Of a stretch of DNA of 64,000 nucleotides, positions 3,983 through 12,047 are shown in pieces. The position numbers were made by a program, and so were the translations under genes. Position 1 is the first letter of the stretch. Each line of letters starts with the position of its first letter. The DNA lies in IMG/VR virus record IMGVR_UViG_3300046665_000548, positions 248,001-312,000 of that record. One strand, written 5' to 3'. Below the pieces are notes generated by a model, which worked only from the letters and a program-made list of their open reading frames with translations, did no database searches and had not been told where the DNA came from.

Positions 3983-4035
3983 TTTTTACGGTTTCTTCCT
4001 GCAAATGTTTGGTCTGGCTATACTATTACTTGTAG

Positions 4036-4108
4036 CTCGGGAAGTAGGACTCGAACCCACATTTTCTGGAGTCAACATCCAGCATCCTACCAATTAGACG
4101 ATTCCCGA
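4036..4108 (-). tRNA. tRNA-Gln(TTG), atypical (G33, no CCA)
   Basis: TCGGGAA/TTCCCGA acceptor, anticodon arm CTGGA-TGTTGAC-TCCAG, GGTTCGAGTCC; 3' GCTA. Confidence 0.8.
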
Positions 4109-4115
4109 ATAAGAC

Positions 4116-4190
4116 TGGCTGGGGCGGGAGGGATCGAACCTCCGAATGCGGGAATCAAAATCCCGTGCCTTACCGCTTGGCGACGCCCCA
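4116..4190 (-). tRNA. tRNA-Gln(TTG), CCA encoded
   Basis: TGGGGCG acceptor, CGGGA-TTTTGAT-TCCCG, 3' GCCA. Confidence 0.95.
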
Positions 4191-4202
4191 ATAGTCTTAA
4201 AG

Positions 4203-4287
<85 letters not shown>

Positions 4288-4291
4288 GCGG

Positions 4292-4434
4292 TGTCTAAGG
4301 GAGGAATCGAACCTCCGTTGTAGTTGATGCTGTGAGGCTCCTTCGGTTTCTTTCCGGACTTCCGCCGACGATCACGCCACAACTATCAATCTACGCCGGT
4401 TCGCCCGGTGCGTATGCCACTCCGCCACATAGAC
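4292..4434 (-). ncRNA. tRNA-Leu-like RNA with stunted anticodon arm and ~75-nt variable arm
   Basis: GTCTATG/CTTAGAC acceptor, Leu-type D arm GGCGGAGTGGCATACGC, T arm GGAGGTTCGATTCCTCC, inserted stem-loop at 4320-4394. Confidence 0.7.
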
Positions 4435-4436
4435 AA

Positions 4437-4524
4437 TGGTGTGGATACTCGGATTCGAACCGAGACGAGGTTTACCTCGGTAGGTTCTGAGCCTACTGCG
4501 TCTACCAGATTCCGCCATATCCAC
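4437..4524 (-). tRNA. tRNA-Leu(CAG), CCA encoded
   Basis: GTAGG-CTCAGAA-CCTAC, long variable arm, ACCA. Confidence 0.95.
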
Positions 4525-4535
4525 AAACAATATTT

Positions 4536-4621
4536 TGGTGCGCCAAACAGGATTTGAACCTGTACGCTCTTTCGAGCACGGGCCTCTCATGCCCGCGTGT
4601 CTACCCTTCCACCGTCAGCGC
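4536..4621 (-). tRNA. tRNA-Leu(GAG), CCA encoded
   Basis: CGGGC-ATGAGAG-GCCCG, long variable arm, ACCA. Confidence 0.93.
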
Positions 4622-4634
4622 GAGATGTACTTTG

Positions 4635-4705
4635 ATGGAGGCCCTGGATTCGAACCAGAACTAACAGGGTCAGCACCTGTCCTTCTACCGTTAAAGTAGC
4701 CTCCA
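4635..4705 (-). tRNA. tRNA-Gln(CTG), atypical (G33, no CCA, extended acceptor stem)
   Basis: TGGAGGC/GCCTCCA acceptor, ACAGG-TGCTGAC-CCTGT, GGTTCGAATCC. Confidence 0.75.
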
Positions 4706-4731
4706 TCAAAGTACACCAAAGATGAGATTAG

Positions 4732-4804
4732 CTAGGGGAGTAGGGCTCGAACCTACGACCGCCTGAATCAGAATCAGGAGCGCTACCAACTGCGCCATCC
4801 CCCA
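4732..4804 (-). tRNA. tRNA-Gln(CTG), no CCA, extended acceptor stem
   Basis: TGGGGGA/TCCCCTA, CCTGA-TTCTGAT-TCAGG, GGTTCGAGCCC. Confidence 0.9.
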
Positions 4805-4816
4805 GCTAATCTCACC

Positions 4817-5101
4817 TCAAACTTTCACACCTCCTTTCCTCATCTTCTTCAACTCTGCTTTCGATAGTTCTTTTTCCACGATGTATCGCATCGGGTCGCC
4901 GTCTTCGTCGTCAACGACCGAGAATCCGGCCGCTTTGAAAGTCCTTGGGATGTTCACCGAACAGGTGCAGTAATCCCAAATTCTACTGTCGTTCTTCTCG
5001 TAACCGTCCCGAAAGACGACCCGATCTAGACCTCCCACGAGCTTCCCGATTTGTCGGGGCGTCGTGTAGATGTGTTGTCGAAAACCTACGCTGGTGCACA
5101 T
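4817..5101 (-). CDS. hypothetical protein, first gene after the Leu/Gln attenuator
   Basis: MCTSVGFRQH... with GGAGA SD; stop lies just before tRNA-Gln. Confidence 0.7.
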   Translation of the reverse strand: MCTSVGFRQHIYTTPRQIGKLVGGLDRVVFRDGYEKNDSRIWDYCTCSVNIPRTFKAAGFSVVDDEDGDPMRYIVEKELSKAELKKMRKGGVKV

Positions 5102-5117
5102 TGCATTTCTCCAAAAC

Positions 5118-5148
5118 AAAAGGCCCCCAGGATTTCTCCGGGAGCCTT
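5118..5148 (-). terminator. second intrinsic terminator of the Leu/Gln leader
   Basis: AAGGCTCCCGGA-GAAA-TCCTGGGGGCCTTTTG. Confidence 0.7.
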
Positions 5149-5161
5149 ACATGCGAACATG

Positions 5162-5191
5162 AAAAAGGCCCTGCCGGAGTTCCGGAGGGCC
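5162..5191 (-). terminator. attenuator terminator of the Leu/Gln tRNA operon
   Basis: GGCCCT-CCGG-AACT-CCGG-C-AGGGCC-TTTTT; 5' arm complementary to leader segment GAGGGCCAACC. Confidence 0.85.
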
Positions 5192-5219
5192 ACCTTTGGT
5201 TCAGTTGCTAGTCACAGCA

Positions 5220-5282
5220 TCACTGCACGCGGGGTTGGCCCTCGTTGGTAAGTTGCAGTTGCTGGAGTAGGTTCTTGAACAT
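5220..5282 (-). CDS. Leu/Gln-rich attenuator leader peptide MFKNLLQQLQLTNEGQPRVQ
   Basis: Codons 5-11 are CTA CTC CAG CAA CTG CAA CTT; ATG directly after the promoter; followed by antiterminator/terminator. Confidence 0.8.
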   Translation of the reverse strand: MFKNLLQQLQLTNEGQPRVQ

Positions 5283-5287
5283 GGTTT

Positions 5288-5318
5288 TATTTATCTCAGA
5301 CTTATGTTGCGCCGTCAA
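5288..5318 (-). promoter_or_regulatory. promoter of the Leu/Gln leader (TTGACG-N17-GATAAA overlapping TAAATA)
   Basis: Minus strand TTGACG GCGCAACATAAGTCTGA GATAAATA AAACC ATG. Confidence 0.7.
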
Positions 5319-5323
5319 TAAGA

Positions 5324-5355
5324 AAAAACGAGGAGAAGACTTGCTTCTCCTCGTC
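5324..5355 (-). terminator. intrinsic terminator of the candidate structured RNA
   Basis: CGAGGAGAAG-CAAGT-CTTCTCCTCG-TTTTTT. Confidence 0.85.
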
Positions 5356-5606
5356 GTGAGTTACTTTTACCAGCAATACAGCCAAGGCCACCGTGGCAGC
5401 CCACGTCCTCGGTTACGATCCGCCAGACTAGGGGTAACGATCCCCATTCCGGGTGGCGACGAGAAATCCATCCTGTCGCTGTATTGTTGGTAAAAGTAAT
5501 AGAAAGCGGGAGGGCTGCGTTGCGATACATCTGACACGGGCACACTGCCGACTAGCCAAATGCACGACTGCCCAGGTGTTCCCTCCCGCCAGTAGTCTTC
5601 AAAATA
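5330..5606 (-). ncRNA. candidate structured ncRNA of about 280 nt, unknown class
   Basis: Own TAAATA (5613-5618) and terminator; GCGGGAGGG/CCCTCCCGC domain; 22-bp near-perfect stem TTACTTTTACCAACAATACAGC/GCTGTATTGCTGGTAAAAGTAA closing a multibranch loop. Confidence 0.65.
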
Positions 5607-5628
5607 CCAGATTATTTACTGGCGTCAA

Positions 5629-6114
5629 CTAAATCTTTTCGATGGTGAAAGTCAGGTAGGGACCGGAGTCTTCGATATGAGCCTCGTATCCGAACTGGTG
5701 AATTTGAGAGGCGAAACGCTGGAGCAAACGTGAGTAGAGCCCGGCCTTGCCAGTGCCGTCGTCCACTCCGCTCTTCTGTCCGGTGAAGTAGATCACGTCT
5801 GGAGCATGTTCGCCAACGAGATCGCGCAACGCTTGGATGAAGGTCGAGAATACTTTGATGGATGACGATCCCGCAGCGCCGGTTGCTTTGTACGGATCGT
5901 GTCTTGCTGTTGAGGCGAGTTCTGGGGAGGCGCGGTCGGTATCGACGCGGAATTTGCAATCCCAATTTTTCAGATAACGTATGAACACGAATTCCAGCGG
6001 CGTGTCGCCAACCTGCGCTTTGCCGACCCATTTGGAGTCAGTCTTCTGCCAAGTAATCGGAAGACTTTCATTGAAACTTTCATAGAGATCGATGATCGCA
6101 CGCATTTCCATCAT
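5629..6114 (-). CDS. hypothetical, probable virion-internal protein
   Basis: TAAATATCCGC-ATG (motif at 6120-6125); N-terminus MMEMRAIIDLYE. Confidence 0.75.
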   Translation of the reverse strand: MMEMRAIIDLYESFNESLPITWQKTDSKWVGKAQVGDTPLEFVFIRYLKNWDCKFRVDTDRASPELASTARHDPYKATGAAGSSSIKVFSTFIQALRDLVGEHAPDVIYFTGQKSGVDDGTGKAGLYSRLLQRFASQIHQFGYEAHIEDSGPYLTFTIEKI

Positions 6115-9452: not shown

Positions 9453-10214
9453 TCAGATATAGAAGACCGCTCCCTGGCAACTTTTGACCATGAGGTCAGC
9501 GTCTTCTTTGAAACCAGCGATCAATTCGCCAAGTTCACGTTGGCCATTTTGATCGAAATACTGCATGTTCCGCAGTCCAACATCCCCCGTCAGAAAATAC
9601 TGCGTGGCCATTTCAATGTTTACTTCACTTGAATCGAGACGTTTGCTCACTGCGGATCGCATGGTCAGAATATCTTGAATATTCCACGGACAGTCTTTTG
9701 CGTTGCTATATTTTTCATGGTTCTGCTGTACAAAATAGTTGATGTCTCTGACTGGTAGCTTATCGCCGCCTTGGCTCATGGCGTGGACTAGTCGATGGAT
9801 CATTATCCACGACGTAGGCGGAAATTGATCATCGTCCGAAAAATTATCGCCCATTACGAAATGGATGCTGGTTGGGTCTGAAAACAAATTGTCATCAATA
9901 TCTGTTTGCAAATCTTGGATGCTTTCGGCCGCTTGTGGGCTGAACTTAGCCATCTTCTGAAGGAGTGATTTATCGAGGCGGCCCTCAGGGAATTTCTCAC
10001 CGAACCGATCCAGTCCAGGAATATTCACGACGTAGATGTATAGATTGAACGGCACGTTCGCGAGCTTCTTCTTATAGACCTGCTTGCGGATTGATTTCTG
10101 AATATGAGCACGGTCGTTCTGGCTGAACGAGCCTTCGTCATCCAAAGGATTGCCGTGCGTGGTGATATCCGCGAGCGGTGCTTCAATCAGATTGATGAGT
10201 TTGCGCATATTCAT
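9453..10214 (-). CDS. hypothetical, probable virion-internal protein
   Basis: TAAATATCCGT-ATG (motif at 10220-10225); N-terminus MNMRKLINLIE. Confidence 0.75.
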   Translation of the reverse strand: MNMRKLINLIEAPLADITTHGNPLDDEGSFSQNDRAHIQKSIRKQVYKKKLANVPFNLYIYVVNIPGLDRFGEKFPEGRLDKSLLQKMAKFSPQAAESIQDLQTDIDDNLFSDPTSIHFVMGDNFSDDDQFPPTSWIMIHRLVHAMSQGGDKLPVRDINYFVQQNHEKYSNAKDCPWNIQDILTMRSAVSKRLDSSEVNIEMATQYFLTGDVGLRNMQYFDQNGQRELGELIAGFKEDADLMVKSCQGAVFYI

Positions 10215-10231
10215 ACGGATATTTATTGCAG

Positions 10232-10318
10232 CGGACAAGGTGGGATTCGAACCCACGGCACCCTTACGGGTGCGGCACGCTTCCAACGTGCTGGATTAAG
10301 CCTCTCTCCCACCTGTCC
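10232..10318 (-). tRNA. tRNA-Ser(GGA), no CCA
   Basis: GCACG-TTGGAAG-CGTGC, long variable arm, discriminator G. Confidence 0.92.
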
Positions 10319-10323
10319 AAGGG

Positions 10324-10415
10324 TGGCGGATGGTGTAGGATTTGAACCCACGGGACCCTTTCGGGTCCGCTCCGCTTCGAACGGAGTGCATTAAGCCAGA
10401 CTCTGCCAACCATCC
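10324..10415 (-). tRNA. tRNA-Ser(CGA), CCA encoded
   Basis: CTCCG-TTCGAAG-CGGAG, long variable arm, GCCA. Confidence 0.95.
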
Positions 10416-10426
10416 TAACTGAATTC

Positions 10427-10532
10427 TTTACGGTGTGGGATTCGAACCCACGGGCGGCGGAGTATAGGTCCATCAGCACCACTCCCCGCTCTATCTTCTG
10501 GAGTCAACCTTAATCCACTCGGTCAACCGTAA
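10427..10532 (-). ncRNA. tRNA-Ser-like RNA with degenerate anticodon arm and enlarged variable arm
   Basis: TTACGGT/ACCGTAA acceptor, D arm GACCGAGTGGATTAAGGT, T arm GTGGGTTCGAATCCCAC, 36-nt arm at 10454-10489. Confidence 0.7.
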
Positions 10533-10538
10533 CGAAAC

Positions 10539-10628
10539 TGGTGGAAACGGTGGGATTCGAACCCACGGAGCCCTTTCGGGCTCGGGACTTTAGCAAAGTC
10601 CTGGGATAAGCCTCTCCCCCACATTTCC
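10539..10628 (-). tRNA. tRNA-Ser(GCT), CCA encoded
   Basis: GGACT-TTGCTAA-AGTCC, long variable arm, ACCA (discriminator A rather than the usual G). Confidence 0.93.
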
Positions 10629-10639
10629 AATGTGCTTTG

Positions 10640-10728
10640 CGGAAGCGGTGGGATTCGAACCCACGGGACCCTTCCGGGTCCTTCGGTTTTCAAGACCGAC
10701 GCGTTCAGCCGGGCTCCGCCACACTTCC
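10640..10728 (-). tRNA. tRNA-Ser(TGA), no CCA, extended acceptor stem
   Basis: TCGGT-CTTGAAA-ACCGA, long variable arm. Confidence 0.93.
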
Positions 10729-10739
10729 GCGAAGCACAT

Positions 10740-10979
10740 CTAGACGTTCTCTATCTCCTCCCTATGGTCGATACACGCTTGAACCTGCTCGACGGTTAAG
10801 TCCCAATTCTCCGCCAAGTCTTCAACGGTGTCACCGTCGAACAAATAGCTGTTCCTTATTAGTTCTGGCCATATGCGGCGGCCGATCAATGTCGTCCGGC
10901 CGCCGCAACGTCCTGGCACCTTCTCGAAGAACTGTCCGATCCGGACGGCCTCCTTGTCGGGTTTCTCGAACTTAGCCAC
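10740..10979 (-). CDS. DUF433-like (VapB45 antitoxin-type HTH) protein
   Basis: PGRCGGRTTLIGRRI...GDTVEDLAENWDLTVEQVQACI; GTG start at 10979 chosen to minimise overlap (frame open to 11039). Confidence 0.65.
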   Translation of the reverse strand: MAKFEKPDKEAVRIGQFFEKVPGRCGGRTTLIGRRIWPELIRNSYLFDGDTVEDLAENWDLTVEQVQACIDHREEIENV

Positions 10980-11235
10980 TAAACCAACTGCTCCAAGTCG
11001 ATGTGTCTGGCGGAACAGGATTTCTCCGCCATTCCTCATGAGCCTTCAGGTACCGTTCGCTCAGCTTGTCTTCAGGCCCGTATACGCTGCCATCCTGATC
11101 GGCATCGTTTGACCCTGTACAGGCTAGCTCGTGGTCTGTGGCCTTCGGGCACCGCTTGTTGCCGCAAGTCTTGCAGACAACAAAGAACTGGTAACCGGGC
11201 CAGCAAGCGCGGCAATTACAACGTCTTTCTGTCAA
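10972..11235 (-). CDS. Cys-rich hypothetical protein
   Basis: CNCRAC...CKTCGNKRCPKATDHELACTGSN. Confidence 0.7.
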   Translation of the reverse strand: MTERRCNCRACWPGYQFFVVCKTCGNKRCPKATDHELACTGSNDADQDGSVYGPEDKLSERYLKAHEEWRRNPVPPDTSTWSSWFSG

Positions 11236-11465
11236 GCTCTCGCCTCCGTGGCTTCCTGTAACGTGCTAAGGTGCTTCCTGATCCAACGCATGAGATGCAT
11301 CGACTTCTCTTCATCGTTCAGCGTTGCGCCCTCGACATCTACTATCGGGACGGGAAACTCTAAACCAGAATCGTTCGTCTGGTAATACAGGACACCGGCC
11401 CTGTAAAACTTAAATCGAGACATCCCCTTCACGTGGTCAGTCACCTTAGTCATCGCTACACTCAT
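11232..11465 (-). CDS. hypothetical protein, first gene after the Ser attenuator
   Basis: AAAGGTGA SD; FPVPIVD...MRWIRK. Confidence 0.75.
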   Translation of the reverse strand: MSVAMTKVTDHVKGMSRFKFYRAGVLYYQTNDSGLEFPVPIVDVEGATLNDEEKSMHLMRWIRKHLSTLQEATEARA

Positions 11466-11505
11466 TTCACCTTTCTGTTGGACCTTGTTTCTTTTCCGGG
11501 CAAAG

Positions 11506-11537
11506 AAAAACCCCGCTCAGATTTTCATCTGGCGGGG
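11506..11537 (-). terminator. attenuator terminator of the Ser tRNA operon
   Basis: CCCCGC-CAGAT-GAAA-ATCTG-A-GCGGGG-TTTTT; 5' arm GGACCCCG complementary to leader CGGGGTCC. Confidence 0.85.
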
Positions 11538-11567
11538 TCCGTTGACCGAGATGTTTCAGCGCACGCG

Positions 11568-11639
11568 CTATCGCATCACCGATCCGGGGACCCCGGAGGC
11601 GCTAGATGACGACGATGACTGGCTGAAGAAATGGGTCAT
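11568..11639 (-). CDS. Ser-rich attenuator leader peptide MTHFFSQSSSSSSASGVPGSVMR
   Basis: 9 Ser codons (AGC TCA TCG TCG TCA TCT AGC TCC TCG); ATG directly after the promoter; followed by antiterminator/terminator. Confidence 0.82.
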   Translation of the reverse strand: MTHFFSQSSSSSSASGVPGSVMR

Positions 11640-11646
11640 GATGGTG

Positions 11647-11677
11647 TATTTATATCGGAGGTTGGTTTTGCTGTCAA
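11647..11677 (-). promoter_or_regulatory. promoter of the Ser leader (TTGACA-N17-TATAAA, containing full TATAAATA)
   Basis: Minus strand TTGACA GCAAAACCAACCTCCGA TATAAATA CACCATC ATG. Confidence 0.8.
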
Positions 11678-11840
11678 TCAAAAAGTGGAGTCCAGAAAGT
11701 TTCGCGAGCCTTGCGCATATGTTCTCTGCCGTATTCGCTCTCAGAGGCAGAAAACAATTGCAGGCGTCGCACGGCAATGAAACGCGATTGTGACCAAATT
11801 GTCGGCCGGAAGCTACGTCGGAAAAGACGCAATATCTTTC

Positions 11841-12047
11841 TCATGTCGGCACTGGAGAAGCGATGGCCTGCTTCAGGTCAGACAAATATCTCTCGAAAGC
11901 GTCTATTACGGACGGCTCAAGAAATACTTGGTTCGTTTTGTGAATGCCGTTGCTAGAGTACAATTCGACTTGATAACCATCAAATTTGGCGTATAGACCA
12001 TCACCGAGATAACGATCTTCTTCCATCAATTCGTCTATCTGCGACAT
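11841..12047 (-). CDS. hypothetical protein
   Basis: 68-aa ORF in a minus-strand run. Confidence 0.7.
   Translation of the reverse strand: MSQIDELMEEDRYLGDGLYAKFDGYQVELYSSNGIHKTNQVFLEPSVIDAFERYLSDLKQAIASPVPT

Follow-up and report, generated by a model that had tools for sequence, protein, structure and literature searches.

How does a phage that carries its own transfer RNA (tRNA) genes decide when to express them? The question is raised by a locus on the minus strand of the window (the whole stretch of 64,000 nucleotides (nt) analysed here, positions 248,001 to 312,000 of IMG/VR record IMGVR_UViG_3300046665_000548), where a promoter, a 23-codon open reading frame (ORF) rich in serine codons, and an intrinsic terminator stand ahead of an operon of tRNA-Ser genes. 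The window is part of a phage contig of 607,744 base pairs (bp; 608 kilobases, kb) in IMG/VR. Its proteins include a phage DNA polymerase, ligase, protease, and tail protein, and the DNA polymerase shares 44-47% identity with the polymerases of Sinorhizobium and Agrobacterium jumbo phages. From the sequence and from modelled folds, we consider it likely that the locus is a ribosome-mediated attenuator, through which the supply of the tRNAs encoded in a phage operon would feed back on the expression of that operon. An attenuator had been proposed in the original prediction, and every consequence of that reading that could be computed (the fold, the codon match elsewhere, and the conservation of the leader in a relative) held.

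The control region of the Ser operon consists of the following elements.

11672-11677, minus strand: -35 element TTGACA, part of a rare promoter motif and kept in the related contig L167
11649-11654, minus strand: -10 element TATAAA, 17 nt past the -35
11568-11639, minus strand: Ser leader ORF MTHFFSQSSSSSSASGVPGSVMR, 23 codons plus stop (ATG 11639-11637, TAG 11570-11568)
11601-11624, minus strand: sensor run, codons 6-13 (AGC CAG TCA TCG TCG TCA TCT AGC)
11588-11595, minus strand: antiterminator 5' strand CGGGGTCC, within Ser leader codons 15-18
11533-11540, minus strand: antiterminator 3' strand GGACCCCG, at the start of the terminator 5' arm
11501-11539, minus strand: intrinsic terminator, a 13-bp stem with one bulge and a GAAA loop, then TTTTTCTTTG

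The promoter, the 23-codon ORF, its nine Ser codons from five synonyms (AGC, TCA, TCG, TCT, and TCC), the 8-nt complement, and the terminator all lie where they had been placed before, on the minus strand. CGGGGTCC (11595-11588) complements GGACCCCG (11540-11533) exactly over 8 nt, and doubles as the 5' half of a local hairpin (11583-11597). The GC-rich terminator hairpin (11539-11509) is followed by TTTTT (11510-11506) and is located between the leader and the tRNA genes. Since the leader ORF has no Shine-Dalgarno sequence and its ATG is found 9 nt past the -10, its translation would be leaderless or nearly so. The promoter motif, TTGAC-N16-GA.ATAAATA.A.C, is present in two copies in the window, and the whole 608-kb contig likewise has two, each ahead of a leader ORF. 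A scan of IMG/VR for the motif found elsewhere a generic strong sigma-70 promoter, which marks no further modules. Note that consensus scans missed both ends of this region. The promoter was not called because position 6 of the -10 is A, not the consensus final T, and the terminator was missed with its loop outside the rule of the scanner. A public gene call (11485-11793, plus strand, 102 amino acids (aa)) spans the leader ORF and the terminator on the opposite strand. This call is probably spurious, so that automatic annotation hides the leader.

These elements would work together as follows. Host RNA polymerase would start at the sigma-70-like promoter, and the 5' end of the transcript would be translated at once, leaderless or nearly leaderless, with the central Ser run calling on all four Ser isoacceptors. 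When seryl-tRNAs are plentiful, the ribosome would enter codons 13-19 and melt or cover CGGGGUCC; the terminator would then form, and transcription would stop at 11510-11506. When any Ser tRNA is scarce, the ribosome would stall on the run just short of CGGGGUCC, and this segment would pair with the terminator 5' arm. Read-through would then proceed into three small ORFs, the four tRNA-Ser genes, a tRNA-like RNA, and a gene for a 253-aa protein. The same switch would serve Leu(CUN) and Gln in a sister module of the window, and Glu, Asp/Arg/Lys/Val, and Cys/Trp/Met in other phages.

The RNA genes under the control of the Ser leader would be these.

10639-10728, minus strand: tRNA-Ser (tga)
10539-10628, minus strand: tRNA-Ser (gct)
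10425-10531, minus strand: tRNA-like RNA with an aberrant anticodon arm, not found in the L167 operon
10324-10415, minus strand: tRNA-Ser (cga)
10231-10318, minus strand: tRNA-Ser (gga)

The earlier finding of tRNA-Ser tga, gct, cga, and gga, with no other tRNA type, is thus confirmed, at 10728-10231. A Ser-like RNA had also been listed, which lies at 10531-10425. The acceptor, D, and T arms of this RNA are present; its anticodon region is aberrant, and it is called as a tRNA at a relaxed threshold only. A strong internal promoter for the tRNA-Ser genes had been named as one finding that would speak against the attenuator. Between the terminator and these genes, the promoter scan, made by consensus only, gave a single weak match (9 of 12 positions, 10834-10806).

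In the original prediction the Ser locus was the second attenuator, with the same logic as one matched to a different amino acid, and the same layout (5318-5111) indeed heads an operon of Leu and Gln tRNAs.

5290-5318, minus strand: promoter TTGACG, 17 nt, GATAAA, with the ATG 7 nt further
5220-5282, minus strand: Leu/Gln leader ORF, 20 codons, with four Leu and five Gln codons
5236-5243, minus strand: antiterminator 5' strand GAGGGCCA, which pairs with 5185-5192 (P = 0.002 against shuffles)
5111-5192, minus strand: tandem terminators T1 (5191-5162) and T2 (5148-5111); pairing is possible between the T1 3' arm and the T2 5' arm
4035-5101, minus strand: 94-aa ORF, then tRNA Gln ctg (two genes), Leu gag, Leu cag, Leu tag, and Gln ttg (two genes)

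Each of the five different anticodons of the operon has its exact complement among codons 5-9 of this leader (CTA CTC CAG CAA CTG). A five-codon permutation of this kind is found once in the window, against 0.009 expected. In the predicted fold of the leader, the 3' arm of T1, once freed, pairs with the 5' arm of T2, so that one event would disarm both terminators. Paralogy between the genes of the Ser and Leu/Gln operons was considered and rejected.

Further modules exist in other phages. Contig L142, reached via the 253-aa protein, carries two of them. In one, the leader MKTLFTMSFYEERSEPSKR and a terminator are directly followed by tRNA-Glu ctc and tRNA-Glu ttc. In the other, a 30-codon leader with a KVVVRKD block is followed by a terminator and by tRNAs for Asp, Arg, Lys, Lys, and later Val. 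The terminators of the Ser and Asp/Arg/Lys/Val modules have a common core, which was searched as a 26-nt pattern in IMG/VR, metagenomes, and bacterial and archaeal genomes. The scan yielded four further IMG/VR loci and seven metagenome loci, most from one phage family; the core lies between a short ORF and tRNA genes in all five IMG/VR hits and in seven of the 11 metagenome hits. In four metagenome contigs, and in the only three hits among 185,579 bacterial and archaeal genomes (all three in bacteria), the core is an ordinary terminator; the latter three have no tRNA link, and L156, L163, and L175-L177 carry it at gene ends with no tRNA nearby. In the third family, the leader has 28 codons and a Shine-Dalgarno sequence, encodes Trp, two Cys, and three internal Met residues, and is followed by tRNAs for Cys, Trp, and Met that begin 7 nt past the terminator. 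L158, a divergent member of this family, has neither a Trp codon in its leader nor a tRNA-Trp in its cluster. Only 7-60 nt separate the terminator from the tRNA in the Glu, Asp/Arg/Lys/Val, and Cys/Trp/Met modules, which leaves no room for a separate promoter.

The codons of these leaders are matched to the tRNAs that follow them. In the Ser leader, nine of 22 codons encode Ser against a background of 0.070 (binomial P = 9e-6). Eight of the nine are Watson-Crick complements of operon anticodons, and all four anticodons are represented. Within the sensor run there are Watson-Crick codons for tga, cga, and gct; gga is represented there by the wobble codon TCT only, and its Watson-Crick codon, TCC, is codon 15 of the leader, just outside the run. 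Enrichment of cognate codons is also seen in four of the six modules other than Ser, namely Leu/Gln (P = 1e-4), Asp/Arg/Lys/Val (P = 7e-3), Cys/Trp/Met (P = 5e-3), and L159 (P = 0.04), a looser candidate described below. Among all 120 permutations that assign leaders to tRNA sets in five modules, the true one scores best, and it does so again among the 5040 for seven. For the five modules outside those chosen in the original prediction, Fisher P is 4e-4. The expectation that leader codons would match cluster anticodons elsewhere was borne out by the Asp/Arg/Lys/Val and (weakly) the Glu module of L142 and by the Cys/Trp/Met module, all located without regard to codon content.

The leaders are also conserved, as RNA and in their codons. 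L167 is a syntenic contig, located via the 77-aa ORF of the Ser operon, and it keeps both leaders of the window. From ATG to T-run, the window and L167 are 92.6% identical in the Ser leader and 94.0% in the Leu/Gln leader. Identity elsewhere is 67-74% in the tRNA-Ser genes, 69-88% in protein genes, 72-76% in promoter spacers, and 56-67% in upstream DNA. The cognate runs of both leaders are identical base for base. The two leaders together have no synonymous and six nonsynonymous codon changes (none and five in the Ser leader), compared with 12 synonymous and nine nonsynonymous changes in the 77-aa gene. As all leader changes are nonsynonymous and the runs are identical, what selection preserves is the RNA and the identity of the codons, and not the peptide. 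The ATG follows the -10 by 7 nt in three leaders of the window and L142 and also in the L167 Ser leader, by 6 nt in the Leu/Gln leader of L167, and by 9 nt in the Ser leader of the window; judged from sequence, spacings of 6-9 nt fit selected leaderless starts. The Ser locus had no match by megablast among 50,697 phage records, and the Ser run, searched as an exact match, was found in the source contig alone. The four tRNA-Ser genes (10231-10728 in the window, 6621-7013 in L167) evolve unusually fast, with the leader ahead of them 93% identical.

Folding places the codon runs where a switch would need them. Leaders were folded with 27 nt around the ribosomal A site kept single-stranded as a stand-in for the ribosome, whose bulk was ignored. 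When the nascent leader is cut before the terminator 3' arm, its minimum free-energy fold joins the 5' arm of the terminator to a stretch within the final 3-9 ORF codons. For Ser, the fold is the CGGGGTCC/GGACCCCG pairing together with inner helices (-34.5 kcal/mol); the 8-bp antiterminator claimed originally is what the nascent leader is predicted to form at minimum energy. In all eight leaders tested, the pairing probability of the arm remains high as long as the A site has not moved beyond the cognate run, and it drops at or just past the run. For Ser it is 0.9 before the run, 0.55-0.69 on the run, and 0.37 at codon 13. It falls from 0.87 to 0.44 at codon 11 for Leu/Gln, from 0.79 to 0.55 at the second GAA for Glu, from 0.75 to 0.03-0.09 past the block for Asp/Arg/Lys/Val, and from 0.85 to 0.42 for Cys/Trp/Met. 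In four modules the run ends at most two codons from the geometric boundary (about 3e-3 under uniform placement, a post hoc value). Taken over the leaders together, complementarity to the terminator arm is greater than in 1000 dinucleotide shuffles, with P = 0.057, 0.002, 0.25, 0.034, 0.020, and 0.092 (Fisher 6e-5). Within the Cys/Trp/Met family, neither the antiterminator nor the terminator strands vary, so that they show no covariation, and compensatory changes are found only in a hairpin past the stop codon.

Several points weigh against the attenuator. The use of the promoter and the translation of the leader ORF are read from sequence. The Ser and Leu/Gln modules were picked for their match, and so the fair test is that on the other five modules given above. 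Among these, cognate enrichment is not significant for the Glu leader (P = 0.12) and absent for L153 (P = 0.59), where a leader with one Met in 35 codons precedes a single tRNA (anticodon cat) that it does not match. L159, where a 46-codon ORF precedes tRNAs for Phe, Leu, Lys, and Ser, is a poor fit and ambiguous. The folds carry weaknesses of their own. Net energy from arm pairing is no better than with shuffled upstream sequence. In the Ser leader the contrast is modest, and pairing returns with the ribosome at the stop codon. The antiterminators of Ser and Leu/Gln are predicted also in RNA free of ribosomes, and likewise when a ribosome occupies the stop codon (P = 0.92 and 0.78, respectively). 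The 'off' state would therefore rely on timing, on steric exclusion, or on the hairpin at 11583-11597, which sequesters the antiterminator 5' strand of the Ser leader. Furthermore, the full-length leader at equilibrium forms the terminator at every ribosome position, so that the switch must be kinetic. Finally, extra tRNA would not relieve stalling that comes from a lack of the amino acid.

The alternative that survives best, although we regard it as unlikely, is that the same switch reads amino-acid starvation through uncharged tRNA and that the relevant cargo is the co-transcribed proteins or a general stress response. It is established, e.g., in the trp model (PMC4007540), that leader-peptide attenuators sense charged tRNA, and a missing amino acid and a missing tRNA are indistinguishable to them. 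Protein genes are indeed present in the Ser and Leu/Gln operons. Past the terminators of the Glu, Asp/Arg/Lys/Val, and Cys/Trp/Met modules, however, tRNAs follow directly and are the sole cargo. The leaders take one codon per isoacceptor instead of one favoured codon, and the leader varies together with its tRNA cargo, as in L158. These features speak against this alternative.

An even less probable alternative is that the promoter, the following ~130 nt, and the terminator are a separate gene for a small RNA or a micro-peptide, that the tRNAs are made by constitutive leakage, and that the codon match is coincidence or composition. A promoter with a terminator 130-170 nt further on is the signature of a small RNA gene too, the leaders are conserved as RNA and not as peptide, and a structured RNA of like layout exists next door to the Leu/Gln leader (5595-5322). 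Against this stand the identity match to downstream tRNAs, which recurs in independent modules, the position of the cognate run at the antiterminator boundary, and the joint loss of the Trp codon and tRNA-Trp; no match to an Rfam family was found for the leaders. Least probable of all is that the hairpin serves in RNA processing, as an insulator, or simply to end transcription from upstream, with ORF and antiterminator there by chance, for although the same motif ends genes in contigs with no tRNA nearby and GC-rich arms find partners in random sequence, the terminator lies downstream and not upstream of the sole promoter, its motif mostly sits between a short ORF and tRNA genes in both IMG/VR and metagenomes, and no other DNA of the locus is conserved as well as the leaders.

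A wider proposal can be made, which we offer as a tentative one. Large phages may carry portable cassettes of promoter, test ORF, and shared terminator that sense decodability per isoacceptor and switch on replacement tRNAs upon depletion, for which host anticodon nucleases or a loss of host tRNA induced by the phage are possible causes; the tRNA genes would be grouped by amino acid to allow every operon a sensor of its own. Recent papers report that tRNAs encoded by phages can save an infection from host defences that cleave tRNA (PMC10264068, PMC11555353, PMC11464382). Such defences are a plausible selective reason for on-demand tRNA replacement, and are not evidence for this locus. The original prediction spoke of a general phage system. 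Its recurrence in L142 and in a third phage family stands; as a general statement it is too broad, since most tRNA groups, the three lone tRNAs of the window among them, are headed by a plain promoter with no leader. If the attenuator is real, phages control their tRNAs by closed-loop, codon-specific feedback, which would account for the sorting of tRNA genes into single-amino-acid operons in these genomes and would tie phage tRNAs to tRNA-targeting immunity. It would also provide a sequence rule that is testable genome-wide (leader codons equal cargo anticodons), and synthetic biology would gain compact natural sensors for isoacceptor supply.

The remaining genes of the Ser transcription unit encode proteins.

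11232-11465, minus strand: ORF of 77 aa with a Shine-Dalgarno sequence, with homologues beside tRNA-Ser genes in other phages
10972-11235, minus strand: Cys-rich ORF of 87 aa, conserved in L167
10740-11039, minus strand: ORF of 99 aa with a DUF433 domain (E = 2e-9)
9453-10214, minus strand: gene of 253 aa, which starts 17 nt past the last tRNA and ends where plus-strand genes begin

The transcription unit probably extends into the 253-aa gene as its last gene. The 253-aa protein belongs to no Pfam or PHROG family, and its structure model (modest confidence, predicted local distance difference test (pLDDT) 65) has no fold match in PDB. Scans for its relatives found the source contig alone in IMG/VR and none in metagenome contigs. 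Homologues of the 77-aa ORF are located between the tRNA-Ser genes of an unrelated array (L172 2492-2710, L173 862-1080) and just ahead of tRNA-Trp in L169 (576-794). This placement suggests a tRNA-linked function for the protein. L172 and L173 themselves were rejected as modules: tRNA-Ser genes flank the 77-aa homologue in these arrays, but a recognisable leader is absent. DUF433 proteins often partner PIN-like nucleases, and here a predicted DUF433 protein is encoded in the same transcription unit as tRNA-Ser genes (10740-11039). The tRNA-like RNA (10425-10531) has a weak and non-significant match to the Y-RNA-like family YrlA (E = 0.4). A gene for a TROVE (Ro60-like) protein exists just left of the window (L151 13124-14533, contig ~245.3-246.7 kb). 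It is conceivable from these sequences that the TROVE protein and the tRNA-like RNA form a phage Ro/Y-RNA pair. No further tRNA cluster was found within 10 kb left of the window.

Three lone tRNA genes elsewhere in the window (Phe, Ser gga, and Ser gct) provide a contrast in favour of the attenuator: a promoter of similar type lies 9-100 nt upstream of each, with neither an ORF nor a terminator. Two serine tRNAs, gga and gct, are therefore each present as one plain and one leader-controlled copy, and the two copies are divergent in sequence. Directly upstream of the Leu/Gln promoter, another unit (5322-5628, minus strand) consists of a promoter-like site (5628-5601), a 270-nt RNA, and a strong terminator (5355-5327). 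The RNA has a predicted fold of -126 kcal/mol (z = -7.8 against shuffles) and no match to an Rfam family, and its first part is kept in L167 (~10010-10085).

Other contigs gave further observations on tRNA clusters. In L142, an ORF resembling a homing endonuclease (DUF559/MTES_1575, 4956-5630) splits tRNA-Val from the Asp/Arg/Lys group, and a Cys-rich ORF, putatively of the same kind, is inserted in the tRNA cluster of L159 (12956-13570). L159, from the 441-kb contig Ga0315284_10000005 of another very large phage, has its 46-codon ORF and the same terminator core at 11807-12010, 240 nt before tRNAs for Phe, Leu, and Leu, together with a 10-bp antiterminator-like complement, GGTGGGGTTT / AAACCCCACC. 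It may be a further, looser member of the modules; its other tRNA groups have no leaders. L146, which has the same promoter type and a 13-codon ORF, was rejected as a module, as it has no terminator or tRNA. Suppressor-like tRNAs were called with anticodon tca (L155 982-1055, inside a Cys/Met/Trp cluster) and tta (L157 3148-3219). They hint at a possible stop-codon reassignment in the phage family of the Cys/Trp/Met modules.

How does such an attenuator compare with known systems? tRNA genes are textbook cases of growth-rate and stringent control at the promoter. In full-text literature searches, no leader-peptide or attenuator control of tRNA genes was reported for bacteria or phages, and the words attenuat-, leader, terminator, and promoter are absent from a computational paper on phage tRNAs. 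The trp, his, leu, thr, ilv, and pheA attenuators of enterobacteria have in common with the present locus a promoter, a codon-rich short ORF, mutually exclusive antiterminator and terminator, and a stall that spares the antiterminator (PMC4007540). They differ in that the cargo here is tRNA genes and not enzymes, in that the system is encoded by phages and lacks a Shine-Dalgarno sequence, and in that the leaders appear tuned to isoacceptor anticodons, in some modules for several amino acids at once. In contrast to trp superattenuation, most modules are predicted to form the antiterminator when no ribosome is on the RNA. Genes of the translation apparatus can be controlled in this manner. In E. 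coli, pheST is under a leader peptide (pheM) rich in the cognate residue. In Deinococcus deserti, leaderless leader peptides are predicted to control aminoacyl-tRNA synthetase and biosynthesis genes, and the leader ORF lies at the 5' end of the transcript, as proposed here (PMC4007540). In both of these cases the charging enzyme is regulated, whereas here it would be the tRNA itself, closing a direct feedback loop. T-box riboswitches likewise monitor the state of a specific tRNA and toggle antiterminator and terminator. A T-box, however, binds uncharged tRNA directly, without translation, and the T-box model (RF00230) gave no hit in 10200-11700 or 4000-5700, even with the threshold at E <= 1. 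The class of mechanism is therefore a known one. What is new is the tRNA cargo, the coding of leaders at the level of isoacceptors and for several amino acids, and the phage setting.

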